64,000 bases of DNA from Setoptus koraiensis (taxonomy: Eukaryota; Animalia; Arthropoda): assembly GCA_048013815.1 (NCBI GenBank), contig CM106585.1:620001-684000 (forward strand). The letters are read 5' to 3'. Of the stretch, positions 48,131 through 64,000 are shown piece by piece. The notes under the pieces were generated by a model. It was given only the letters and a program-made list of their open reading frames with translations, did no database searches and was not told the origin of the DNA. Made by a program: the position numbers and the translations under genes. Each line of letters begins with the position of its first letter. Within the stretch, counting starts at the first letter, position 1.

Positions 48131-50257
48131 ATGGGGATTGTTATTAGATATGTTGTGAGAGCATTGATAATCATCATATTTCTTGGACTCTTGGTGACAT
48201 TGTTTATATTATGGCCGCAAATAATAAAATCGAGCCTCGAAAACAATATTGTATACAGAAGTGGCTCTGAGCCACTGTATAGATTTCAAACTAATGATGG
48301 CGCTATCTTGAAATGGCATTTTCATTTGTTTCATGTAGAAAATTGGCACCTTATCGTAACAGATAATACGAGAGAGTTCATCCTGAAAGAAGTGGGGCCC
48401 ATCGTTATGGATCAGTATCAGACTAGGTCTATAATAGATCACGACCAGAAGAAAGGTGAGATAACTTTCAAAGTGGAACGTTATTGGATCTATAATAAAC
48501 GAGAGTCAGCAGTGCCTTTCGACCGAAAAATTACCATTCCAAATATGCCTGTTTTAGGCCTAGCTGAAGCTCTATCTGATGTTGACACGATTAGAAGGTG
48601 GATTTTCCGATATTTATTCCTCACAGAACGGTATGTAACAAAGGAGAAAGAGTTGATTAATGGAACAATTAAGGAATTTCTGTTTGATGGCCAAAAGAAC
48701 AAAATGTTGGAAGCAGCACAAGCTGAGGTTGAAGAATCATCTTACAAAGATATAGTCTTAGATCAATTGGGTGGCAGATGGCCACTGGAGGACAATATGT
48801 TTGCGTTTTTCTACAAGCGGAACAACTCTCAGAGCATGCTCTACGACAATTTTACTATAACTATGGATACAGGCGAAATCAATTTGGACAATATAGGGAA
48901 GATCGTCAAATGGGATGGGGTAACCAACCTAAATAAATGGCCAGATGATCCGAAAAATTGCAATTCATTGGGAGTGCCGTTGGGCGAATCATTTGGGCCA
49001 TATCTGGAGAAGAACAATACGAAAAAATTGGAACTATTTGTGCCAGATCTTTGTATGAAGCTAAAATTTATCAGAGAAAACGAGAATGAGTACTGGCGAG
49101 GAATCAGAACCTTAAAGTTCACACTGGACAACGAAACTTTTTTCGCTCCTAGCAAGAATGCTGGAAACAAGTGTTATTGTTTTAATAGTACAAAAAATAA
49201 ATGGTGCGATTATGATGGAATAATCGAAATGGAAACATGTCACAGCAAAGGCTTCTACACATCGATGCATCATTTCTATAACGCATCGGAGGAGATTTGG
49301 AAAATGAATCCCAACTCTCGCATCACTGGGTTCCGTCGGCCCAATAAAGATGATACAAGTTACATATTGATTGAACCAAATACAGGTATCACAATTTATG
49401 CGAGCGTCAAGGTGCAATTGAACGTCAAAATTCAATATAGTTATTTGGATGATAATTTCAACGAATTTAAAGGATCAAACAATCACATTCTATTGCCAGT
49501 TCTGAAATTACAAATGTTAGCCCATGCAAATGGCTGGACAGCTTTTAAAATCCTAATCAAATTATGGTTTATCAAATATTGGGTTGTAGCGATATTGACT
49601 ATTTTAATGGCTTCTGTGACAATGGTCATAACCGAATGGTTTTTCTTGCACCAAAAACAATCAGAAACAAAACAGGGATCGTCTGAAGATCCCACAACTC
49701 TAAGTTCGCGACAGCGAACGCAATCGCCGACCAGAATTTCAAGAGTTACTAAATTTCCTCTATTTACAATAATTCCAAAGAGCGCAAAATCGCGAATAAT
49801 TCCAAAGAGCGCAAAATCGCAGATAATTCCAAAGAGCGCAAAATCTCGAATAATTCCAAAGAGCGCAAAATCTCGAATAATTCCAAAGAACGCAAAATCG
49901 CGGATAATTCCAAAGAACACAAAATCGTGGATAATTCCAAAGAGCGCAAAATCGTGGATAATTCCAAAAAGCGCAAAATCGCGGATAATTCCAAAAAGCG
50001 CAAACTCACGAATATTCCCAAAAAGCGGAAAATCGCGAATACTCCCAACGAGCGCAAAATCGCGAATAATTCCAAAATCGCCCGAGAAATCGGGAGGAAA
50101 ACGAATCCCGAAATTGTCGACAAGTCCAAAATCGGGATGGGGTCTACACTCACCAAGGACTATAGAATCTTCAGGGTCGAGAAAACAACGGAAGAGGCCC
50201 AAGTCACCTAAAACACCCAAAATATCTAATTCGACCACATCGCAGTTGTATTTTTAA
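48131..50257 (+). CDS. CD36/scavenger receptor class B family protein with long basic repeat tail (708 aa)
   Basis: N- and C-terminal TMs, LKEVGPIV, ITIPNMP, KWDG..NL..W, C..DG....C...FY.S..HFY and IEPNTG...A.VKVQLN. Confidence 0.88.
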   Translation: MGIVIRYVVRALIIIIFLGLLVTLFILWPQIIKSSLENNIVYRSGSEPLYRFQTNDGAILKWHFHLFHVENWHLIVTDNTREFILKEVGPIVMDQYQTRSIIDHDQKKGEITFKVERYWIYNKRESAVPFDRKITIPNMPVLGLAEALSDVDTIRRWIFRYLFLTERYVTKEKELINGTIKEFLFDGQKNKMLEAAQAEVEESSYKDIVLDQLGGRWPLEDNMFAFFYKRNNSQSMLYDNFTITMDTGEINLDNIGKIVKWDGVTNLNKWPDDPKNCNSLGVPLGESFGPYLEKNNTKKLELFVPDLCMKLKFIRENENEYWRGIRTLKFTLDNETFFAPSKNAGNKCYCFNSTKNKWCDYDGIIEMETCHSKGFYTSMHHFYNASEEIWKMNPNSRITGFRRPNKDDTSYILIEPNTGITIYASVKVQLNVKIQYSYLDDNFNEFKGSNNHILLPVLKLQMLAHANGWTAFKILIKLWFIKYWVVAILTILMASVTMVITEWFFLHQKQSETKQGSSEDPTTLSSRQRTQSPTRISRVTKFPLFTIIPKSAKSRIIPKSAKSQIIPKSAKSRIIPKSAKSRIIPKNAKSRIIPKNTKSWIIPKSAKSWIIPKSAKSRIIPKSANSRIFPKSGKSRILPTSAKSRIIPKSPEKSGGKRIPKLSTSPKSGWGLHSPRTIESSGSRKQRKRPKSPKTPKISNSTTSQLYF
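49769..50080 (+). repeat. 27-bp coding tandem repeat (IIPKSAKSR x~12)
   Basis: ataattccaaagagcgcaaaatcgcga and variants. Confidence 0.95.
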
Positions 50258-51804: not shown

Positions 51805-52833
51805 TCAATAAGTTCGCAAGTATTCGAATTGGCTTTGAAGATCAGGGCTAATGTCTTCAAATTGATCAGCCACATCAAATCTCTTCGGCTCTAGTGGCCG
51901 AAGCAAGCTGCCAGGTATTACATGTTGCGGAGGAGGTATTGATATTTCTACAACTTGGCAATATTGAACAATTCTGAGCCACCGACAGACTCTTGGACTG
52001 CTCTTCAATTTGTCGTCTGTAACGTTGTCTTCTCCGGCCCTGAAGCGATGGAAAGCTAATATCATCATGGGATTAATTGAGTTTTGCGCGTAACTATCGA
52101 TCAACTGGCAAGATTGCTTAAGATCCTCAAACTGTTTGACCTCCTCTTGGCTATCCAGACGAATAACTCTGCTGGTCCCTTGCTTTCTGAGTCCACGTTC
52201 AGCATTTCTCAACATCACAGTTTCTGCTGTAAGGAGTTTCTCCGGTAGGTCAACTTCTGAAATGGGCACACTCTCTTCGACCAGTCTACGAACAATTTGA
52301 TCATTTTCGACAACATCTAGGCTCCGTTTAAGGGCCTCGTCTGATTGTTCTGCTTGCTCTAGTTTTGTTTCGAGACTTCCTTTGCAAATTCGAATGATCT
52401 GACCGAATATTAATGATGTGAATTGGAACAGTCCATGGGTTCTCTTGCCAGGTTCAATTCGTCTACTCATGCCAGCAATGAGATCCAACAATTCTTGGAT
52501 TAAATTCTTTTCGCACACAGAATGTAATGTTCGAATTCTTTGAACCATTTCGTACAAAGCTCTCACATCTCCCACACCATCATAACTGCTCAAGCAGTCG
52601 TCAATAAGAAAATGAGTTTTCTCACTCTCAAGTTCTGGTGTTTTTTCCATCTCTTCTGCGAATTCTATGAATTTAGATATTGAGTTGAGAGATTCTATTC
52701 TGTATTTGCAACGAGATTTCGATGATGTCCATCGTCGTTCCTCCTCCCGCTCGCGCCTAGTTGCGCTGCAAGGCACGTACCAACCAACGACGCCGACGAT
52801 CAAAAATAACAAGAACACTTGTTGAACTGACAT
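51805..52833 (-). CDS. 6-Cys secreted protein family, member 1 (342 aa)
   Basis: Signal peptide and family motifs WTSS...C, CL.S.DG.GD, HSVCE, CK..LE.KLEQAEQSD, C.LID.YA and LKSS.RV.RW....YCQ. TATAAATA at 52941-52934. Confidence 0.88.
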   Translation of the reverse strand: MSVQQVFLLFLIVGVVGWYVPCSATRREREEERRWTSSKSRCKYRIESLNSISKFIEFAEEMEKTPELESEKTHFLIDDCLSSYDGVGDVRALYEMVQRIRTLHSVCEKNLIQELLDLIAGMSRRIEPGKRTHGLFQFTSLIFGQIIRICKGSLETKLEQAEQSDEALKRSLDVVENDQIVRRLVEESVPISEVDLPEKLLTAETVMLRNAERGLRKQGTSRVIRLDSQEEVKQFEDLKQSCQLIDSYAQNSINPMMILAFHRFRAGEDNVTDDKLKSSPRVCRWLRIVQYCQVVEISIPPPQHVIPGSLLRPLEPKRFDVADQFEDISPDLQSQFEYLRTY

Positions 52834-53464
52834 CTTAATCTGTATCTATTATTCGATCCACTGAGTCCTACTGTTTATTGTTTCATTTAAGCACAATTTC
52901 TGGGATAAAATTATTGCTTTTCACTGCCGTCCCTATTTATACCAGTCCGAAATTGCTCACCCCAAAAAGCCATATGAAAGAAGCTCTATTTTTACATCGC
53001 GATATTATCAATTGACTAACATGAGTAGTTAGATTCGCAGTAACCCAAATAGTCTCTGAAATATTTATTCTAGCTGAAACAGTCATTGAAGATTTCTCTC
53101 GCAAAGCAGTTTTTATCAGTCATACGAATATGTAGCATGGAACAATGCAGAGTTGTTTGTCACAAATGGACCAACAAATCTATTTTGGTTTCTATATTTG
53201 CGAACACAACAATCGATTGAAACTACCAGACGCGTTATATGACTAATCGCCTCCTAAAGGGTGTTTCAGTCAGATTGCACATCTATGAAACATACTAGCT
53301 GGCACATATTCTTTATGAAGTAGTGATCAAATTAAACTCAGCCTAACAAATCAGATGGGTAGTGTTGAGGTCAAGAAAAGTCCCAATTTGGGAGAATTAT
53401 TAATCTCGCGCTACATTCACAATCTATCTATTAAACCTTTCATATGCTGACATGTGCAACATAA

Positions 53465-54580
53465 CTAACTTGGTAAGTTAGTATCATTTAAATGATCGAT
53501 CTTCTTCTGACGCTTCAGAATCCATCCTTTGATTCTCTCATCGGAGCCTTCAGGGATCTCTGCTTTCGTAAGGTAGCTTTCTAAGTCCCACTCGATCTCA
53601 GTGAATATTTCTGGCTCTTCGAATTTATATTTGTATGGTTCATCACTTATAGCGGCTGTTTTCTCATCTTCCACATCAGGAAGAACTTTAATCAACGATA
53701 TACTCTGACAATATTGCACGACGTCAAGCCATCTAATGACTCGTGGGCTACTCTTCAATCTGTTATCGGTAACATCATCGACCTCGCCAGCTCTATAACC
53801 GCTCAGAGCGAGTAAAGATACGGGATAAATAGAACTCTGAGCGTATTTATCGATTAATTTGCAAGCATTTTTGATTTTCATCAATTCAGCCACCATTTCC
53901 TGGTCATCTAAAGCGATAGGAAACAACTTTAATGATCCATCCTTAGACTTCAAAGAGCCAGTCATGAAAATGTAATCCGCCAGATCAGCATTTGAATATT
54001 TTCTGCGTGGCATAATTTTTTCGATCAGGGGGCCTAGACTTTTATCCAATGGCTGTACGTTCCTTTTTTCTACCCTATCTTCAATGGAATTTAAACTTTG
54101 CCTCAGAGCCTCATCTGACTCTTCTGCTTGCTCTAATTTCTTTTCTATATTTCTTTTGCACGTGAGAATAACCTGTCCAGTAAATAATGTGAAAAATCGA
54201 GTAAGTCCATGTGAATATTTGATTTTGAAAAATTTGTCGACAGTTGCGTTGGCGATCATCCGTTTCTTGAATTGAACTAATTTGTCGATAAAATTCGGCT
54301 CGCAAACCGAGTCTATTCCAGGTATTTCCTCAACAATTTCCCTACATGCTACTATATCGCCCAATCCATCAGAGCTGCGTAGACAGGTGTTGGCTAAGTC
54401 GCGACTTTGGTCCTGAATGGTCCGATCGAAATCTTTAACGAAGCTCTTAAATTCTTCTACAGAGTCTATGCGTTCGACCTTCTCCCAACAGCTAACTCCT
54501 GAAGAGGTCCAAGGAGCCTTTTCTTCCAAATCACTGAAAAAGCATCCCACACAGGCGAAGGCGAATATTGAGCTCCACAT
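53465..54580 (-). CDS. 6-Cys secreted protein family, member 2 (371 aa)
   Basis: Same motifs; TATAAAA at 54840-54834. Confidence 0.88.
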   Translation of the reverse strand: MWSSIFAFACVGCFFSDLEEKAPWTSSGVSCWEKVERIDSVEEFKSFVKDFDRTIQDQSRDLANTCLRSSDGLGDIVACREIVEEIPGIDSVCEPNFIDKLVQFKKRMIANATVDKFFKIKYSHGLTRFFTLFTGQVILTCKRNIEKKLEQAEESDEALRQSLNSIEDRVEKRNVQPLDKSLGPLIEKIMPRRKYSNADLADYIFMTGSLKSKDGSLKLFPIALDDQEMVAELMKIKNACKLIDKYAQSSIYPVSLLALSGYRAGEVDDVTDNRLKSSPRVIRWLDVVQYCQSISLIKVLPDVEDEKTAAISDEPYKYKFEEPEIFTEIEWDLESYLTKAEIPEGSDERIKGWILKRQKKIDHLNDTNLPS

Positions 54581-55285
54581 TGAAATCGAGATTGATATTG
54601 AAATTTATTTATTTACTTAAATCTCTACTTTAGGTATCGTTCTGACGAATGGATTCTTTTCCTCCTCCTTGCGACAAATCTCGATCGATAAGAGCTTCTT
54701 TGGGATCTTCCAACTGAAGATCTTTGGATACACCTGATGTAACCAGATGTTATTTCTCTCATAGAGTTGACTAATAATAGAATTGTTTTATACATGAATT
54801 TATCACTTTGACGTGTTTCATATCTCCTCTGTATTTTATATCAGGTCTATCAAACGTGAACACAGCTCCATGTTCTATTTTTAAATTTAAGTCATAACTT
54901 ACTTCAATGACCAACAAATCAAGCCAATCGAGCTCGAGCTAACACATGGCGAAATTTTTTTCCACCTTCATCTCACTGGCGCCCACCATTGAGACCCATC
55001 TTTCAAACCAACATGTAGAGGGTAAGCTATCAAAAGGTCAGATACACTGCGCTTGTGTTCAGCAAACGTTTTGGAGATAGTCAGATACAGAAGCATTCTC
55101 ATAAGATGCAGAATCTAAATCTCCCTAGAAATCAGAAATTGAGTTAAATCAAGTGGTGCAATCGAATAATGTGGTTTTAAAAAATATACACGATTTATTT
55201 TGATAGGGTCACTTGATATTGCATAAATTTTTTCAACGTACACGGTTTATTCTCTTCGATATACACTAATGATAATCTAAATAAT

Positions 55286-56395
55286 TTATTTTTGATCTTT
55301 CTTGAACCGTTTCTGGATCCGACCCTTGACTCCATTATGAGAACTTTTCGGGGGATCAAAATAGCACTTTAGATCCCAACCAATATCGTCAAATGTTTCA
55401 ATTTCGTCGAATTCATGCCACTCCACTTGTTTAGTCTCTTCATCGTCCAATGCTTGCTGTGGTAGACTTTGTTTAATTTCTTCCGCCATATCCAAATCAA
55501 CATGGATGAGGGACACACTTTGGCAGTATTCGACGGTGTTGAACCATCGAGTAACTCTTAAACTCTTCTTCAAGCTTGCATCGACATCACCATCAACGTC
55601 TCCCGCTCGACAACCTCTTAATGCAAGTCTACTTATGGGATAGATAGAGCTCTTGGCGTATTTATCAATTAATTTACAAGCCTTCTTTATATTCAAAAAA
55701 TGCTCCAATGTTTCTTTGCCTCTCAAAGTGAGACGAAACAATCGCGGAGAACCATTTGTTGACTCGATAGACTCGGCCATGAAAATATCCTCTGGTAAAA
55801 CAGGTTTCATAGTTCTGCCTTGCTTTATTGAGTTAACTGAGGAGCGTAGCTCATCCACTTTCTGTTCTGCTGTCTCGACATATTCTAGGCTCTGTCTGAG
55901 TGTTGCATCTGATTGTTCTGCTTGCTCAAGTTTCTTTTCGAGATTTCTTTTGCATGTCAAGATAACTTGACCAGTGAATAAAGTGAAAAATCGAGTGAAT
56001 CCATGGGTCGATTTGTGCCGAAAAGCTTTGTTGCATGTAGCATTGTCATGCATTTGTTTTTTGAAGTCCAACAATTGGTCAATGAAATCCGGCTCGCATA
56101 CAGAATGAATTGTTTGTAACTGTTGAACTATTATATTCAAATTTATTAGATCAACTAAGCCGTTGGAACTTCGAAGACAGTTATTTACAAGCTGTGTTAT
56201 TTGTTTCTCATCTTTTTTCGTGTTATCCAAATCATGAATGAAGGCTTCAAATCTTTTCACTGAGTTCATAAATTTGACCTCCTCCCAACATTTATCCTTT
56301 GAAGAAGTCCATCGGGCTTCTATTCCGTTTGCCGTGATAACCCTATCGCTGAAAAGGCAACCGAAACATATTAAAATGAATATCAGACTCAGCAT
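55286..56395 (-). CDS. 6-Cys secreted protein family, member 3 (369 aa)
   Basis: Same motifs; TATAAATA at 56648-56641. Confidence 0.88.
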   Translation of the reverse strand: MLSLIFILICFGCLFSDRVITANGIEARWTSSKDKCWEEVKFMNSVKRFEAFIHDLDNTKKDEKQITQLVNNCLRSSNGLVDLINLNIIVQQLQTIHSVCEPDFIDQLLDFKKQMHDNATCNKAFRHKSTHGFTRFFTLFTGQVILTCKRNLEKKLEQAEQSDATLRQSLEYVETAEQKVDELRSSVNSIKQGRTMKPVLPEDIFMAESIESTNGSPRLFRLTLRGKETLEHFLNIKKACKLIDKYAKSSIYPISRLALRGCRAGDVDGDVDASLKKSLRVTRWFNTVEYCQSVSLIHVDLDMAEEIKQSLPQQALDDEETKQVEWHEFDEIETFDDIGWDLKCYFDPPKSSHNGVKGRIQKRFKKDQK

Positions 56396-57216
56396 TGTAA
56401 TCTAAACTTATGTATCAACTCTTTCTGCGAACAATTTTTTTATCTTCGAATTTCCTTGATTTTTCGAGGATAGAATGCTCTTTTTTGGAAAGTATTGAGA
56501 GCTCCAAGAGCTGATAGACAAATCAAACTTGCGATCGCACTAAACAGGGTCAGAAGGCCTCGAGTATTCAACCGCTTTGACAATCATTCGACTTTCGTAT
56601 AACTTACCTTTGGGATGAGGCGAATCTACCCAACAGTGTCTATTTATAGATTTAATCTAGGAAAAATGCTTCAATCTAGACCCATGCTGAGGTTGTTTTT
56701 TGGATACTCCCATATGACTAGACAATTGATTTCTTTCCATTCGATTTGAGTCCTACTGAGATCTCGATTTTATTTTTGCAATTGGTCCGCTATGTTGAAT
56801 GGTGCAGCACATAGAAGCCGGGCAATTCTGAAAATATAGGCCTGCATGAAGCATAATTTCTATGAGGCGTTTTAGTCATCTGATAGAGCGAATTCGTGAT
56901 GGCAACACCAGCTTAAGATCAATTGATTAACTTCACTAATTTTTCTATGGTACCCATTTGTACAAGTGACTTAAGATGACGCTTATATGTGAATCGTGTC
57001 CACGACAGTGCTGTAGACGCAAAATCAAATGCTATATGAATCAACATATATTGTCATGATTATTTGATATTTATTCTTTTGTCTCGTATGCACAATATCT
57101 ATTACCAAATACTTATATTGAGTTCTTTCGTGATGTTCACTGTGTTTATATCTCAGATTTCCTCTCATCCGTTCCATATTCCATTTTCAATGAAATGAAG
57201 GTCTCTAATTATCGGA

Positions 57217-58320
57217 TCAGATTTGTCTGCGCCGAATTATCAGACTCCGGTTTTTCAATCCTTTAGCTTTAGGCTCCGGTGAATGAACAGAACAATGTAA
57301 GTCCCAACCGATATCTTCAAATTTGTCATCAACTTCGAATCTCTTCCGCTCCAATTTGGTCTGTCCTTCATCCGATATATCGTGCATAAAACTCTCAGGA
57401 ACAAAACAGTGCGGGATAACTTTTACCAGAGAAAATCCCTGACAGTATTGGACAGCGCTTATCCATCTAACGACCCGCGAGCTACTCTTTAGTTTGCTGT
57501 TCGTAACATCATTATCGTCTTCGGCCTTTATTCCAACCATAGCAAATCTGGTTATGGGATGAACAGAGTTTTGAGCGTAACTATCGATCAATTTGCAAGC
57601 CTGCTTGACCTTCGCAACTAGCTCGACCATTTCTTTGCTCTCCAATGTGAGAGAAGCGTGCACTCCTTGTCCGTGCCTAGCCTTTATGGCAGCAGTCAGT
57701 ATGATATTCTCAGGTAGATCGATACTCTTTGATCTACTTGGTAAAAGTGATTCGAATGAGGGCCTAATACTTTTATCATTCACAATAACATCCAAGCTCT
57801 GTCTGAGTCTTGCATCTGATTGTTCTGCTTGCTCGAGTTTCTTTTCGAGATTTCTTTTGCAAGTCAAGACAATCTGACCAGTGAATAATGTATAGAATCG
57901 CAACAATCCATGAGACCGCTTAGAGTTCTTATTGCTACTTCCATTGTCACGCATGCGTTTGGTAAATTTGAACAATTGATCAATGAACTCGGATTCGCAC
58001 ACTGAATGTATAGTGGGCAACTGCTCTATAATTCTGTTCAACGATCTGATATCTCCCTCGCCATCAACACTATTCAAACAATCGTTGATGGTTTTGGTAA
58101 TTTGTGCTTTTTCTTGCTTTCGCTCTGTAGGTAAGTCTAACTCTCTCGCAAATTTCAAGAAATCTTGCACTGAATCAAGCAATTGCAATCTATCAAGACA
58201 TATAACTTCCGATGCGGTCCACGGAGCTTCGATCTGATCTTCTGAAGCCCCGGCGCCTAGGAAATATCCATCGAGAAAGGTAACAATAAATGTTGACATT
58301 AACAACCAGTGCACCGACAT
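57217..58320 (-). CDS. 6-Cys secreted protein family, member 4 (367 aa)
   Basis: Same motifs; TATAAATA at 58456-58449, with the CTGGTATAAATA context shared with member 1. Confidence 0.88.
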   Translation of the reverse strand: MSVHWLLMSTFIVTFLDGYFLGAGASEDQIEAPWTASEVICLDRLQLLDSVQDFLKFARELDLPTERKQEKAQITKTINDCLNSVDGEGDIRSLNRIIEQLPTIHSVCESEFIDQLFKFTKRMRDNGSSNKNSKRSHGLLRFYTLFTGQIVLTCKRNLEKKLEQAEQSDARLRQSLDVIVNDKSIRPSFESLLPSRSKSIDLPENIILTAAIKARHGQGVHASLTLESKEMVELVAKVKQACKLIDSYAQNSVHPITRFAMVGIKAEDDNDVTNSKLKSSSRVVRWISAVQYCQGFSLVKVIPHCFVPESFMHDISDEGQTKLERKRFEVDDKFEDIGWDLHCSVHSPEPKAKGLKNRSLIIRRRQI

Positions 58321-58807
58321 TGCAATTTGGCTCTCTCTAAATGATCAAACCTTTATTTGATTGTTTGAGATAGCCTATGGTCACTACTATTTGCTTTGGC
58401 GAATTTCTAAAACATTTCTACTAACAATCCTTCGTTGAACATTGCATTTATTTATACCAGATCGTCATCGTCATTCAGACAACATTTCTGATGCTTGTTT
58501 ACAACAATTCTATTTTTATATAAACGGATGTAAAGAATGCTATTGACAACATATTGAGAGATGTTTAACAAGTTATTTTAGAAAAAAAAAATTTATTTCT
58601 ATCTTGGGACGTTCCGCGGACTCTGATATGTAGTTGTTTTCAATCCCTTTCATTAATCGTATATCGAATTCATGTTCAAACATTTTAGAGGGTAGTTTGA
58701 AAAAGCCCTGTTTCTATATTACTATAGGAGCTACCGAAATCTATCAAAATGTTGTCTGTATTTTCTCATCAACAATTACAAGGATACTGGTCAATCTCGT
58801 ATTTTTT

Positions 58808-60232
58808 TCAATTTTTCGATCTCATGTATCTACCAGTAAGCAAACGAACCATGAAAAGCAGTGCAATTAAGGCAATACCGGCGATGCATACCCACCAGAT
58901 TGTCGCTAAGGCATGGTGTGTACCCGCGGATACTGTTGCGACGTGATGACCCGCTGCGGCACTTGTTGTAACAGCATGACTCGTCAGCAGGCTCGTACTG
59001 CCCCCAAATTTGACTTCTCCCTCTGGGTCCAAATCAGAAAACATTGAATCTTTAACATTTGGTTCCCGACCTATGCCCAGTTTCGTAAACATCCTATCAG
59101 CTAGTTTATCACTCACTTTCCCTAGGCGTCTCACGAGCCAACCTTTCAATCCCGATGTCGGAGTAGTGAAAGATTGTATGCCACTATCGAATTTATCGAA
59201 TGTTTCCACGTCTTTATATCTGTGATACTCTAAAAGTTTTGTCTTCTCTTTATTCAAATCGTCCCATCGCAAACTCTTAGGAATCTCTTCTTCAATATCC
59301 AATTGAGGCTTAATCATCAGTACGCTCTGACAGTATTGAACCGCTTTGAGCCAACGAACAACTTTTGAGCTGCTCTTCAGGTTATTGTCCAAAATCTTCG
59401 ACTCATCTCTAGCAAAATAACCATTTAGAGCGAGTTTAGCTATGGCATATGTCGAGCTTTCTGCCCAATGGTCAACAGACAAGCAAGCTTTTTTCATTTT
59501 CGCAAATTGTTTTACCATATCGAGGCTATTCAAAGTGATATAGACAGATTGTGGTGTTCCATCTGGTGACTTAAGTGACTCGGCCAAAAATAGATTATCC
59601 GGCACAACCCCTACAATTGAACTGCTTAAAATCATTTTTTTCATCAAGAAGCGCATACCTTTACTCAATGGCAGATCGTCAATGGGGACAGTCTGTGTCT
59701 GTGACTCGTCAATGACTTTCAAGCTCTCTACGATAACATCCGATTGTTCTGCTTCATCTACTTTCCTTTCCAAGCTCTTTTTGCATATCACAATAACCTG
59801 GCTGGCTAACATTATGAAAAATCGTGATAATCTGTGCTTCTTTGAGAATTTTCCACTGTTATTCATCCGAAAGTTGAATTCCAACAACAGTTTAGTGAAA
59901 TGCGGTTCACAAACAGAATGAATTTTCGGCAAAGACTCTACGATGTTTTCCAATTCTTTGATATCACCCAGACCGTCAACACTACGGAGACATTTGTTGA
60001 TAGTTTGTGTGATTAGTTGTTGATTACTGTTATGCTCTAATGCTAGTTTCAAATCATTGCTGAAGCCCAAAAATTTCTCCACTGAATCCAACTCTGCAAC
60101 CTTCTTAACGCATTCCGTTTTTGACGTGGTCCAATCATGGATTGCAACAGCTTCTCGGCTGAAAAAGAAGCCACCAAGACAGGTCATAAAGAGTATCGAG
60201 CTCGTCAACGGAAGTACCAACATGTTAGCCAA
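58808..60232 (-). CDS. 6-Cys family, member 5, with C-terminal TM anchor (474 aa)
   Basis: Same motifs plus an extra stalk and TM (IWWVCIAGIALIALLFMV) followed by RLLTGRYMRSKN. Confidence 0.88.
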   Translation of the reverse strand: MANMLVLPLTSSILFMTCLGGFFFSREAVAIHDWTTSKTECVKKVAELDSVEKFLGFSNDLKLALEHNSNQQLITQTINKCLRSVDGLGDIKELENIVESLPKIHSVCEPHFTKLLLEFNFRMNNSGKFSKKHRLSRFFIMLASQVIVICKKSLERKVDEAEQSDVIVESLKVIDESQTQTVPIDDLPLSKGMRFLMKKMILSSSIVGVVPDNLFLAESLKSPDGTPQSVYITLNSLDMVKQFAKMKKACLSVDHWAESSTYAIAKLALNGYFARDESKILDNNLKSSSKVVRWLKAVQYCQSVLMIKPQLDIEEEIPKSLRWDDLNKEKTKLLEYHRYKDVETFDKFDSGIQSFTTPTSGLKGWLVRRLGKVSDKLADRMFTKLGIGREPNVKDSMFSDLDPEGEVKFGGSTSLLTSHAVTTSAAAGHHVATVSAGTHHALATIWWVCIAGIALIALLFMVRLLTGRYMRSKN

Positions 60233-61468
60233 AATATCTTTTCACGCCTTCCGTTCAAGCGAAGGATAACTTGCTCACCTAATTCGTTTTATTTAAATAA
60301 GTATTGTGCTGAAAGATAATCAACTCTTTTCAAGCCAAAGCGAGACCCACTTTCATTCACTCACTACTATTTAGTTTTTTGCAATAATAATTGCCACTGC
60401 AAACAGTTCTATGTAAAAATTCTATTTTCGTTGAAACATTATTAGAAGCGATGTTTGATGATAACGCTAAAAAAGTATTTCTGTTTAAAAAATTACCTAA
60501 AAAAAATTCCTCTGCCTTAGAAATGCACATTTTATTCACAAGAGTCTATTTTCGGATGAGTTTGCACAGTCAACATGAGTTTATAGAGTTTTTTCATTTT
60601 CACTGCTAACTCGAAATTCTTTTTAACAAACCCTCAACGCTGCAGATTTCCGTCACTGGTTTCTGTCACTATTTTTTGTTCGGATCAGAATTGATCTATT
60701 TTTCACAACTTTTTTTAACAGGATGTAAGCTTTTCACAGCAAAGAGGATCTGTTGACGAATGTCTTCCATTTCCAGAAGCTGATCGATCGAAAGAGTGTT
60801 GTGGTTCATGCAAACGAACGCCTCACCGTCATTTTATGAGGGCTGTAGTTTCGACAAACGACTTGCATGATTGGGTTCAAGTTATTATTATGATTATTAT
60901 TATTCATATGCCAATTTTTTACTTATCATATTTACAGAGGAAATAGTATTTATACACTATGCCCAATACTTGTTCACATCGTGACAGAAAACGACATTAG
61001 TAACAAAGTTTCTTCGATTACTTTTCGCGTGTCTGCTTGCAACTCTCAATCTGGTTCCTTGGTGATTCGATCTGACCCGAGGTCGGTAAACAACAAAGTT
61101 TAAAAATAGCAGCGACTCTTGCATTGACTCGTAGAATAGTTCCGGTAGTTCCATTATCGCTTTTCTATGACATTTGACCCCTCATTCCGTCACTCCCTAA
61201 GCGTGCTATATGTAATCTTGTGCGTCTTCGGTGTCAATATTGTCGACTCTGAACCAACGAAGCGATAAAACAACGTTCGCCCGTCCACAACGAAGGAATT
61301 ATCTTTATAGAGAAAGAATCGACCCTCGATCAAGAGATTCGCTATAACTTGATTGAAATTCCGAAACTGACCATACAAGTACAAGAACTCATCAACTACA
61401 ATTGACATCAACATAAAGTTGGTGAATTCATCATATTACTGCTTCGATGGCTGGCTACCAATGAGTAA

Positions 61469-62540
61469 TTAGGATTGCATTTGTGTCATGATGCTCGAGA
61501 ATAGATTAATCTGATTTTGCTGGCCAAGCTGTTGCTGTTGATGATGATGATTTGCGGTTACACCTGATGATGCTGCAGCGGCAGCAGCAGCAGCGGCTGC
61601 TGCGGCCGCGTTAAACACCGTGTTTGTATTACAAAACAAATTATACGATTGGGGACCTATGAGCATCGCCTGTAGCATGCGCTGTTGTTGTTGTTGATAT
61701 TGTAGGTGATCGAATTTAATTGATGGTGGCCTCTGTTGACTATTGATTGCGGTCGCCGACACTGATTGTGTATTACTGATTGGTTGTTGTGCACTGTTGA
61801 TTGGAACTGTCAATTGTGCTGGCATTGTTATTGGCGTTGTTGTCATGGCGATGGGCATTGGCAGTGGCACTGGAATGTTGTGAGTTATAGTGCTAACGGG
61901 CTCAAATAACGGACTCTTTTTCGCCACTGAATGGTCACTATTATCTTGCTCTGAGTGTTTACTGTTTACTGTTGTTTGCTCGCTTGGTTCGTTGATATGT
62001 TGTCGTTGTTGTTGCTGTTGTTGTTGCTGTTGTTGCTGATGTTGAGTTGCCGTCAGACACATGCCTGCATTTGTGACACCGTGATGATACGCATGATGAT
62101 GATGATTGTTTTGAGCAGCCGCGGCCGCAGCCAATAGCGACGTGGGCGAGTTATGTTGAGCTGCGGCCGCCGCCACTGCCGCCACCTGTAAATTGTTCAC
62201 AATTGACCTGCTCAACTGCTCGTGGTTGCTTAGATGCGAGGCTAAATTGGCCGAACAGGCAAGATACAGACTCGTCGAGTCGCCTTGTTGCTGATAACGG
62301 TGCTGATTGTTGTTGGCGTTGCTGTTGTTGTTGTGATAAACAGCCGGATGTAGGTATGAATGGTGCGGTTTGGTGATGGTGGCATGAGCTTGATTTGTTG
62401 CTGGTTCATTGTTGCTGCTGTCGGTGCTGTTAGACGCCGATATGGACTCTTCCAAACTGGAGCTGCCACTGGTATAGCCATCACTTATGCGCTTACTTAG
62501 TTTGGCATCAATGTATTGATTGTAGATGTCATTATTGTGC

Positions 62541-62592
<52 letters not shown>

Positions 62593-63094
62593 GCTGTTGC
62601 GTCATCATTGTATGTTTCTTTATAGAAGCACTAGTGACAGTGTCATTGGATGCTGTGGTTGTTGTCGATATAGGTGGAGGCGTCAATGAAGTGTCGATGA
62701 GTGTTGTTAGGGGGTTGTTGTTGTTGTTGGCTGCAGAGTAGAATGTTGAGTTGTGAAACGGCATGTGATCGTTGCTGCTGTTTGTATCTAGTTTGTTGTT
62801 GCGCTTATTACCTATATGTTTCATCAAGGTGCTCTCTCCTGGTCTCTGTTGTAGTTGTAGTTGTTGTTGATGATGTTGTTGTTGTTGTTGTTGTTGCTGC
62901 TGCTGCTGCTGATAGTCGTAGTGGTGCTGGTACTGCATTTGCATTTGTAACTGTTCTTTTGCAGTGAATAAGTCAAACTGTGGCAAATTGTTGCTGTCAT
63001 ATTGTTTATTGGTGTTGGTGCTGTTGTAAATATGATGATGTTCGGTATTGTTGAATGACGTTGGCCCATTTGTTTGCACACCAACTTGTGCACC

Positions 63095-63129
<35 letters not shown>

Positions 63130-63931
63130 TTGCATGATTGTTGCTGTTGTTGTTGTTCGTTTGTGTGGCCAAACCAGCCAAAGTGTGCTGATGATGCATG
63201 CTGGCGGCACTTGACACAGCCATGGATTGAACATGATTGATTAACGAATAACGTTTGTATCGTTTGCGACGCCTCAAAAAGCTGCCATTGTCGAACATGT
63301 CCTCCGAATGCGGATCTAAACTCCAATAGTTGCCCTTGCCTGGATTTGCGGCCTCGCGAGCCACCTTCACAAAACAATCATTCAACGATAGATTGTGTCT
63401 AATACTATTCTGCCACAATGGATATTTGTCTTTATAATAGGGGAAACGTGACTTAATAAAATCACAAATACCCGCCAATGTTGTGCGTCGATTGTGCGAT
63501 TGCAATATGGCCATTGTAATGAGTGCTATGTAAGAGTAGGGTGGCTTTGGGTGCACAGTGGTGGTGCTTTTCATTAATTGTTTATTACCAGCCAATTGAT
63601 TACATACAGCGGCTTGGCTGTTACTTTTGGCATTGTTTGTTGGCTTGTTGTGTTGCTTTATTGCTTGCTTGCCATTACTACTACTGGTCAGTTTGTTGTT
63701 ACTAGAATGCTGTTTTTTCGCTTTGGCCATTTTACTATTGGTGCTGTTGTGATTGTTGCTTGTGCAAGTTTGCAAGCTATCGCCGCTGTTACTATAATCG
63801 TCGCTTATGTCATAGGCCACTGGATCAATCATGTCCTCGTCGTTGTCGCTGTCTGCACCTTGCAACGTTGTCTTGCCGTCGTCGTGATGACGAGGCGAAC
63901 TGGTCGGCTCCACATGATTGTCGCGATTCAT
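61469..63931 (-). CDS. FoxD: Forkhead box D transcription factor with poly-Q/N/A/T/H tracts (~820 aa from ATG 63931)
   Basis: [17 protein letters not shown]...[13 protein letters not shown]...[17 protein letters not shown]...[31 protein letters not shown]. Confidence 0.92.
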
Positions 63932-64000
63932 ATTCACCACTGATCGTTGATTATTGACTGTTAATGTAAAAATTACTGATTTCTTACGACTTACCAATGA

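Follow-up and report, generated by a model that had tools for sequence, protein, structure and literature searches.

Introduction

The tumor necrosis factor (TNF)-receptor superfamily, whose domains are small cysteine-rich beta modules, includes the secreted 'decoy' members osteoprotegerin and DcR3, and the Ly6/uPAR clusters contain both glycosylphosphatidylinositol (GPI)-anchored and secreted (SLURP) members of a three-finger beta fold of approximately 80 residues. The only published eriophyoid genome, that of the mite Aculops lycopersici, has a size of 32.5 Mb with 84% intronless genes, and 612 secreted proteins are predicted from it, more than half of them without orthologues outside the species (PMC7738191). 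Mites of the eriophyoid type are minute plant parasites, and the molecular basis of their manipulation of the host is unknown (PMC7738191). Here we describe a tandem array of five related genes, termed m1 to m5 in the order of their coordinates, from the arthropod Setoptus koraiensis (assembly GCA_048013815.1, contig CM106585.1, positions 620,001 to 684,000 of the forward strand). This stretch of 64,000 nucleotides (nt) is referred to as the window, and its own numbering is used throughout. One of the five genes encodes a predicted membrane-anchored protein and the other four encode anchor-less forms of the same ectodomain. We are confident that the five genes form a tandem array of maintained paralogues belonging to an undescribed superfamily, a statement that covers their architecture, ancestry, conservation, and isolation from known families.

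Results

One anchored and four anchor-less paralogues in a tandem array

An initial annotation made from the sequence of the window had described five co-oriented, intronless paralogues with six invariant cysteines and a series of shared short motifs, and this description was borne out by the list of open reading frames (ORFs), by tblastn, and by alignment. All five ORFs lie on the minus strand between positions 51805 and 60232, with the order of transcription m5, m4, m3, m2, m1 (Table 1). None of the ORFs is broken, and the intergenic spacers within the array measure 487–821 nt. Pairwise identities of 31–47% and tblastn E values of 1e-39 to 1e-97 indicate that the five are clear paralogues. 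When the five proteins were searched against the window by tblastn, only these five places were found, with no sixth copy and no relic. The alignment of m1 to m5 contains 50 invariant columns, which include the six cysteines and the motifs of the initial annotation. The m5 ORF is listed with a TTG start, and the first ATG is codon 4, located 9 nt downstream of the TTG; for this reason the m5 gene more likely begins at the ATG.

The unit shared by the five proteins is a mostly helical ectodomain of approximately 330 residues with a small sheet, and its six cysteines span approximately 250 residues. Leaders and membrane segments were called on the basis of hydropathy and of a model generated with AlphaFold 2 (AF2). 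Each of the five members has a leader of cleavable appearance, in the form of an N-terminal uncharged hydrophobic run of 12–22 residues, and the leader and the C-terminal anchor were the sole hydrophobic runs in the hydropathy analysis. An N-x-S/T sequon is found at the same loop in four of the five members, as well as in several orthologues, this being consistent with passage through the secretory pathway. Only m5 extends beyond the shared domain, and the late hydrophobic helix is found in m5 alone; the hydropathy analysis and the AF2 model thus agree with the initial annotation in confining the stalk, the transmembrane segment, and the short tail to this member. The m5 stalk contains five histidines. 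A permissive tblastn search of the DNA downstream of m1 to m4, using the tails of m5 and of three relatives, revealed no remnant of a stalk or membrane segment. The linker loop and the C-terminal regions are the most divergent parts of the proteins, as had been claimed, and this is apparent both from the alignment and from the windowed ratio of non-synonymous to synonymous substitution rates (dN/dS). In m1 the glycosylated loop is deleted and the C-terminus is the shortest of the five.

The array is one branch of a wider superfamily

A word search recovered nine relatives of the array genes, all from raw-read (Logan) assemblies. An exhaustive HMMER search with a 14-sequence profile returned 57 representatives at E up to 1e-3, 33 of these at E up to 1e-10, most matches extending over at least about 300 of the profile's 373 positions. 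In an alignment of 40 members that takes in m1 to m5 and the weakest HMMER matches, every sequence has Cys in each of the six columns, making the homology of even the weak matches credible. Thirty representatives were looked up by exact sequence, and their sources were Logan, ENA, and JGI only (raw-read assemblies and metagenomes); three word searches, whose 26 rows overlap in part with these 30, gave the same types of source. No NCBI or UniRef entry was found among the 30 representatives, the sole name being the 'hypothetical protein' carried by one of them. The array had originally been considered lineage-specific. This claim must be modified, because the family is confined neither to the array nor to the species; the array is one branch of an orphan superfamily of 57 representatives, which also has other loci and further branches, both soluble and anchored.

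Most of the relatives are anchored and have a length of approximately 520 amino acids (aa). Clade A consists of anchored proteins of 480–520 aa whose stalk is rich in His and whose tail is short; it includes m5, and the anchor-less genes of the array nest inside it. Clades B and C contain anchored proteins of 520–600 aa with a cytoplasmic tail of 60–70 residues, and the proteins of group F terminate in a hydrophobic stretch. Two further groups, D and E, are soluble, one having an Asn-Phe-Leu motif near its end and the other an acidic tail. A clade C gene and a soluble gene with an acidic tail occur together in one sample. The contigs of the relatives also carry long uninterrupted ORFs for Med23, FMR1-like, hexokinase, and integrin-linked-kinase-like proteins, indicating that their hosts are intron-poor animals.

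The region corresponding to the m5 stalk is His-rich in all anchored members of clade A (P0006, P0008, P0010, P0013, P0014), that of P0014 being a Gly/His repeat. The histidines hint at a sensitivity to metal or pH. In addition, in a sequencing run that holds the locus (X1, see below), several other contigs, one of them of 12.7 kb, match the most conserved motif regions of the array (55908-55972, 57815-57880, and 59961-60067) at 80–90% identity, which suggests that further family members are encoded elsewhere in the same genome.

The anchored form is ancestral

A maximum-likelihood tree was constructed from 34 full-length members and rooted on clades B and C, and a second tree was constructed from the ectodomain columns only. 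The anchor-less proteins m1 to m4, together with five proteins from a related species, form a clade with support of 93/99 in the full-length tree and 89/97 in the ectodomain-only tree. This clade has m5 and its orthologues, including P0008, as its sister group (100/99), and both nest within clade A, which is supported at 100/100 in both trees and otherwise contains eight anchored proteins, three of them with a truncated C-terminus. The tree based on the ectodomain gives the same picture as the full-length tree, demonstrating that the tail does not drive the result. These rooted trees support the earlier proposal that the anchored form is ancestral, with anchor loss and tandem duplication giving rise to the others; the transmembrane form is not derived. 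Since the anchor-less genes form one clade inside the anchored clade A, the anchor was lost once within this clade, with tandem duplication taking place afterwards. Across the superfamily as a whole, the distribution of anchors among the sequences implies at least three changes of anchor state. The His-rich stalk is gone from the anchor-less genes together with the anchor.

The order of events is also addressed by the gene order in a second species, represented by sample SRR33593474, which may mix species. One of its contigs (L001) contains an anchored m5 orthologue (P0008) followed by an m4 orthologue, and another (L005) contains an m3 orthologue followed by a partial m2 orthologue; at least four further copies of the m1/m4 sub-clade are found on L004, L006, and L007. 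Because the same gene order is found in the second species, the array predates the separation of the two, and the set of its members turns over. Identities between orthologues are 55% for m5 and P0008, 67% for m4 and P0001, 68% for m3 and P0005, and 71% for m2 and the partial gene on L005. Loss of the anchor is thus old, having happened before the divergence from a species whose orthologues share only 55–71% identity.

Two further observations were made in the same sample. At a second locus (L008:1342-5146), a soluble group D gene (P0045), an anchored clade A gene (P0006), and a cathepsin L gene are found together, and such pairings of a soluble with an anchored gene may recur. Upstream of the m3 orthologue, a short segment (L005:34-159) is 60% identical to residues 179–220 of m2 and may be the relic of a further copy.

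The predicted ectodomain is not close to a solved fold

Searches of Pfam with m1 to m5 and 30 relatives (35 members scanned) gave sub-threshold noise only, and a 53-member profile searched against all sequences of the PDB gave no matches at E up to 10. We therefore also compared predicted structures. The AF2 model of m5, based on 14 sequences, has a predicted local distance difference test score (pLDDT) of 75, the ectodomain core for the most part scoring close to 90 or higher. The AF2 model of mature m4, based on 53 sequences, has a pLDDT of 91.1 and a predicted template modeling score (pTM) of 0.90, and consists of approximately 16 helices and a sheet of four to five strands. Using the m5 model, Foldseek searches of PDB, BFVD, and ESM Atlas found nothing at E 0.001 or better, the best match in BFVD (E 0.07) being to unrelated proteins; a VIA wide search reached a best Z of 6.6, which involved the N-terminal bundle only. 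Using the m4 model, the best Foldseek match in PDB had an E of 0.96, matches in ESM Atlas had template modeling scores of 0.29 or less, and an exhaustive VIA-align comparison with 48,161 chains gave a best Z of 5.2, no chain reaching Z 5 over the full model. According to the notes accompanying VIA-align, helical models that lack a genuine match usually still attain a Z of approximately 14, so the m4 model is unusually isolated. For the metagenome-borne relative P0065, feature and structure searches were blank, the Atlas model of this protein being poor.

These Pfam, PDB sequence, and fold searches are in agreement with the initial annotation, which recognized no named domain, and they gave no confident match to any known family, including housekeeping families. 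Absence of a match is not proof of a new fold, but the ectodomain as modeled at least has no close counterpart among solved folds. Two specific families of extracellular proteins were considered as well. For insect odorant-binding proteins (PBP_GOBP), which are helical with six cysteines in three disulfides, there was neither a Pfam match nor a fold match, and the domain described here is about three times larger than their approximately 120 residues. Glypicans, which combine a helical Cys-rich core with a C-terminal anchor, gave no Pfam match in the 35 members, including those with a C-terminal hydrophobic end, and were absent from the fold lists.

Selection and polymorphism

Substitution rates were determined by the codon-based method of Nei-Gojobori on orthologue pairs, giving dN/dS ratios of 0.15–0.31 (Table 1); dS values of 0.8–1.3 are near saturation, making these ratios rough. 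Sliding-window analysis revealed no stretch with a dN/dS above 1 in m3 or m4, and one stretch near 1 in m5 (residues 101–160). Four sequencing runs hold the locus, all of them as contig sets from the same species at 99% identity or more. In run X2, there are six differences per 636 intergenic bases compared to five per approximately 3,640 coding bases. The coding differences, which are too few to interpret by class, comprise three non-synonymous and no synonymous differences in m3 and m4, and two non-synonymous and four synonymous differences in m5. Based on the orthologue dN/dS ratios and the contrast between coding and intergenic polymorphism, all copies evolve under moderate purifying selection, and all five genes are maintained rather than decaying. 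The fast, positively selected evolution expected of arms-race proteins is not apparent in these sequence comparisons.

Runs X2 and X3 also contain a Cys-to-Arg difference at window position 56035 (m3 codon 121), which affects a cysteine outside the six invariant ones. Contig depth in these two runs was uneven across positions 54650-60600, being 12.9 over m2 to m4, falling to 3.6–5 between m4 and m5 and over the 3' part of m5, and reaching 97 from the 5' part of m5 into the DNA upstream, whereas run X1 was flat at 105.6. The jumps in depth in X2 and X3 could reflect uneven whole-genome amplification or an RNA-like library, the kind of run not being on record.

Promoter elements and neighboring genes

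According to the initial annotation, four of the genes have an upstream TATA box. This was confirmed for m1 and m4, which share an identical and clear element (GGTATAAATA), the position of the m4 box being conserved at -137 before the related-species orthologue on L001. The claim thus held only in part, as m2 has a distant box at -212, m5 has a TATTTAAATA-like element, and m3 has no TATA box within 220 nt upstream; no clear TATA box is found within 200 nt of m2, m3, or m5.

The window is dense in long intronless ORFs with short spacers, a style that points to an eriophyoid (gall or rust) mite as the likely source, with plant feeding as a presumed habit. The array is flanked by a CD36-family gene and by a forkhead gene. 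Following its second membrane segment, the CD36-family protein contains approximately 14 tandem copies of the 9-residue unit Ile-Ile-Pro-Lys-Ser-Ala-Lys-Ser-Arg, which occupy roughly the last 150 codons and are unusual for CD36/SNMP proteins. The forkhead gene, upstream of the array, encodes several long polyglutamine and polyalanine runs.

Table 1. Features of the array and its flanks, in window coordinates, with substitution rates for orthologue pairs.
Feature	Position	Strand	Description	dN/dS	dN
m1	51805-52833	minus	342 aa, anchor-less; fastest-evolving copy (end branch 1.0)		
m2	53465-54580	minus	371 aa, anchor-less; orthologue partial	0.17	0.18
m3	55286-56395	minus	369 aa, anchor-less	0.15	0.19
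m4	57217-58320	minus	367 aa, anchor-less	0.24	0.20
m5, as listed	58808-60232	minus	474 aa, membrane-anchored; start TTG at 60232	0.31	0.31
m5, from first ATG	58808-60223	minus	471 aa, more likely gene; order: leader, six-Cys helical ectodomain, His-rich stalk, membrane helix, 8-9-residue basic tail		
m5 stalk	58910-59030	minus	His-rich		
m5 transmembrane helix	58838-58909	minus	residues ~439-462 from ATG (hydropathy); AF2 helix 439-473, TTG numbering		
m1 TATA box	52936-52941	minus	GGTATAAATA, 108 nt upstream of ATG		
m4 TATA box	58451-58456	minus	GGTATAAATA, 136 nt upstream of ATG		
CD36-family gene	48131-50257	plus	flank of array		
Forkhead gene	61469-63997	minus	flank of array		

Discussion

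The ancestral form of the array proteins is a type I single-pass membrane protein composed of ectodomain, stalk, membrane helix, and tail, an organization retained by m5. A single ancestor of m1 to m4 lost the stalk and membrane helix and was then duplicated in place before the species split. Entry of the ectodomain into the secretory pathway is predicted from the leader, the sequon, the six unvarying cysteines, and the fact that the anchored forms have a type I topology. In our proposed interpretation, m5 would serve as a binding module, receptor-like or adhesion-like, displayed on a membrane and facing the cell exterior or the lumen of an organelle, and m1 to m4 would be released as free ectodomains. 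These could bind the same class of partner as m5 in solution, thereby acting as modulators, competitors, or carriers, with the setting being either the physiology of the mite itself or the feeding interface. The conserved columns other than cysteine are F, L, V, K, E, G, W, and Q, either hydrophobic or single residues, and a protease- or hydrolase-like set of residues was not found among the conserved columns. The lack of catalytic-looking invariant residues argues that the domain binds rather than catalyzes.

This functional part of the account, with m5 as a membrane-displayed binding module and m1 to m4 as soluble modulators, competitors, or carriers, is put forward tentatively, as one candidate among several; the account as a whole, comprising the array as described above together with the mechanism, we hold to be slightly on the probable side. 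Several points weigh against it. The calls for leaders and secretion derive from hydropathy, and a binding role is deduced from the architecture and the absence of catalytic features, not from a match to any known protein. The basic C-terminal ends of m2 to m4 could tether these proteins to membranes or to the anchored paralogue, in which case they would not diffuse. The near-saturated dS values noted above apply here as well, and none of the four runs found to hold the locus is on record as RNA. A more far-reaching version, which we regard as doubtful, is that the domain represents a novel extracellular fold, either originating in eriophyoid-type mites or restricted to them, and that the array forms a working receptor-plus-soluble-ectodomain system whose released paralogues regulate the ligand of the receptor or reach the host plant.

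The initial annotation suggested that such proteins might be salivary effectors or soluble decoys. As effectors, m1 to m4 would be made in the salivary glands and injected into plant cells so as to suppress defense or reprogram the tissue. The absence of an anchor, the secretion-type leaders, and membership in a lineage-restricted, locally duplicating family are all features expected of such effectors, and the compact, intron-poor genome resembles that of the eriophyoid A. lycopersici (PMC7738191). However, the pattern of evolution points in a different direction. The orthologues of the anchor-less genes are under purifying selection (dN/dS 0.15–0.24) with no window above 1, and the anchor-less genes change more slowly (dN 0.18–0.20) than the anchored m5 (dN 0.31). 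Furthermore, many branches of the family are anchored, single-copy, and syntenic, in this respect resembling housekeeping membrane proteins, and the lack of a run recorded as RNA bears on this reading too. We consider a role as salivary effectors unlikely.

A second possibility is that the anchored forms reside in endosomes or lysosomes (or in the endoplasmic reticulum or Golgi) and that the anchor-less copies are their soluble luminal partners, comparable to accessory subunits such as OSTM1. An indication comes from clade C, in which the 60–70-residue cytoplasmic tail is conserved and mostly ends in Tyr-Lys-Pro plus a hydrophobic residue. The motif Tyr-x-x-hydrophobic is an endosomal or lysosomal sorting signal, which the C-terminal end of clade C resembles. 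Clade C is also single-copy, and its gene directly follows a kinesin gene in at least two species (L002:10001-11578; L009-L011:10001-11584). In contrast, m5 and its close kin have a tail of 8–20 residues without the Tyr motif, and m1 to m4 do not have a KDEL/HDEL-type end. An OSTM1 chain was present among the weak VIA rows obtained with the m5 model (Z 4.4 over 62 residues), but this row is within the noise, was absent with the better m4 model, and was not accompanied by a match to the Pfam family OSTMP1. Residence of the array proteins in an organelle lumen is accordingly quite improbable in our view.

We also considered whether the genes could be domesticated envelope glycoproteins of viruses with class I fusion proteins. 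In a language-model feature search, the clusters closest to m4 were those of baculovirus F, gypsy Env, paramyxovirus F, haemagglutinin, and coronavirus spike proteins, with a score of 0.84 and a low recognition value. Scores below 0.9 are leads only, and a third of shuffled proteins receive ten hits from the same clan; the type I architecture with its C-terminal anchor also fits such an origin. The lead was rejected after profile and fold tests failed: m1 to m5 had no Pfam match to Baculo_F, Gypsy, or Fusion_gly at E up to 1, the m5 model had no fold match in BFVD, and no viral fusion protein was found above noise in the PDB Foldseek and VIA lists with either model. In addition, the flanks of the array are the CD36-family and forkhead genes, not a retroelement, and ordinary host genes lie beside the relatives in other species. 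A viral origin is thus very improbable.

Finally, the idea that m1 to m4 are decaying, truncated, and non-functional copies of m5, which would account for the missing anchor and for the long branch and deleted loop of m1, has next to nothing to recommend it and is contradicted for m2 to m4, as the ORFs are intact, orthologues are kept in the second species at dN/dS 0.15–0.24, the six cysteines and one TATA box are conserved, and coding DNA is less polymorphic than intergenic DNA.

The array is of interest for several reasons. An orphan superfamily with a confidently predicted domain of approximately 330 residues that lacks sequence and structural neighbors represents a good target for structure determination. 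The locus also constitutes a natural experiment in which a membrane protein has been converted into a set of soluble paralogues, the order of events being provided by the rooted tree and by synteny with the second species. Moreover, the array supplies concrete genes for the study of secretion, saliva content, and binding partners. If the reading of a new fold in a receptor-plus-soluble system were true, this would be the first structured candidate effector or decoy family for this group of crop pests; if instead the proteins are ordinary internal membrane or luminal proteins, they still represent a new conserved family for the annotation of such genomes.

Comparison with known systems

The array shares single characteristics with several well-described systems. 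Like the TNF-receptor superfamily, it represents a family of anchored ectodomains in which some paralogues lack the anchor and are, by our interpretation, released. There is no relation in sequence or fold, the domain described here being helical with approximately 330 residues and six cysteines; the term 'decoy' applies by analogy only. The Ly6/uPAR clusters are alike in that tandemly arranged genes encode a disulfide-locked extracellular module and anchored paralogues lie next to soluble ones, and again the domain itself has no similarity. OSTM1, the accessory subunit of the CLC-7 chloride transporter, is alike as a type I single-pass protein with a disulfide-stabilized helical luminal domain and a short tail, and differs in size and cysteine pattern. 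The Plasmodium 6-Cys (s48/45) proteins share the nickname only, having six conserved cysteines, a surface or secreted location, and both anchored and non-anchored members. Their domain is a beta sandwich of approximately 120 residues, whereas here the six cysteines extend across approximately 250 residues of a domain whose model is mainly helical, and there was no Pfam match to s48/45 at E up to 1.

A further parallel is offered by the lineage-specific families in the predicted secretomes of eriophyoid mites such as A. lycopersici and of spider mites, which are likewise orphan, leader-bearing proteins encoded by compact genomes of the mite type and without homologues in annotated proteomes (PMC7738191). 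The present family differs in that its domain is large and structured and ancestrally carried an anchor, in contrast to short peptides that evolve fast, and it was matched to no named orthogroup. The array combines the familiar and the new: a membrane protein that spawns soluble tandem paralogues follows a familiar pattern, orphan secreted families are common in such genomes (PMC7738191), and the domain family is an undescribed one whose fold, as predicted by the models, stands alone.

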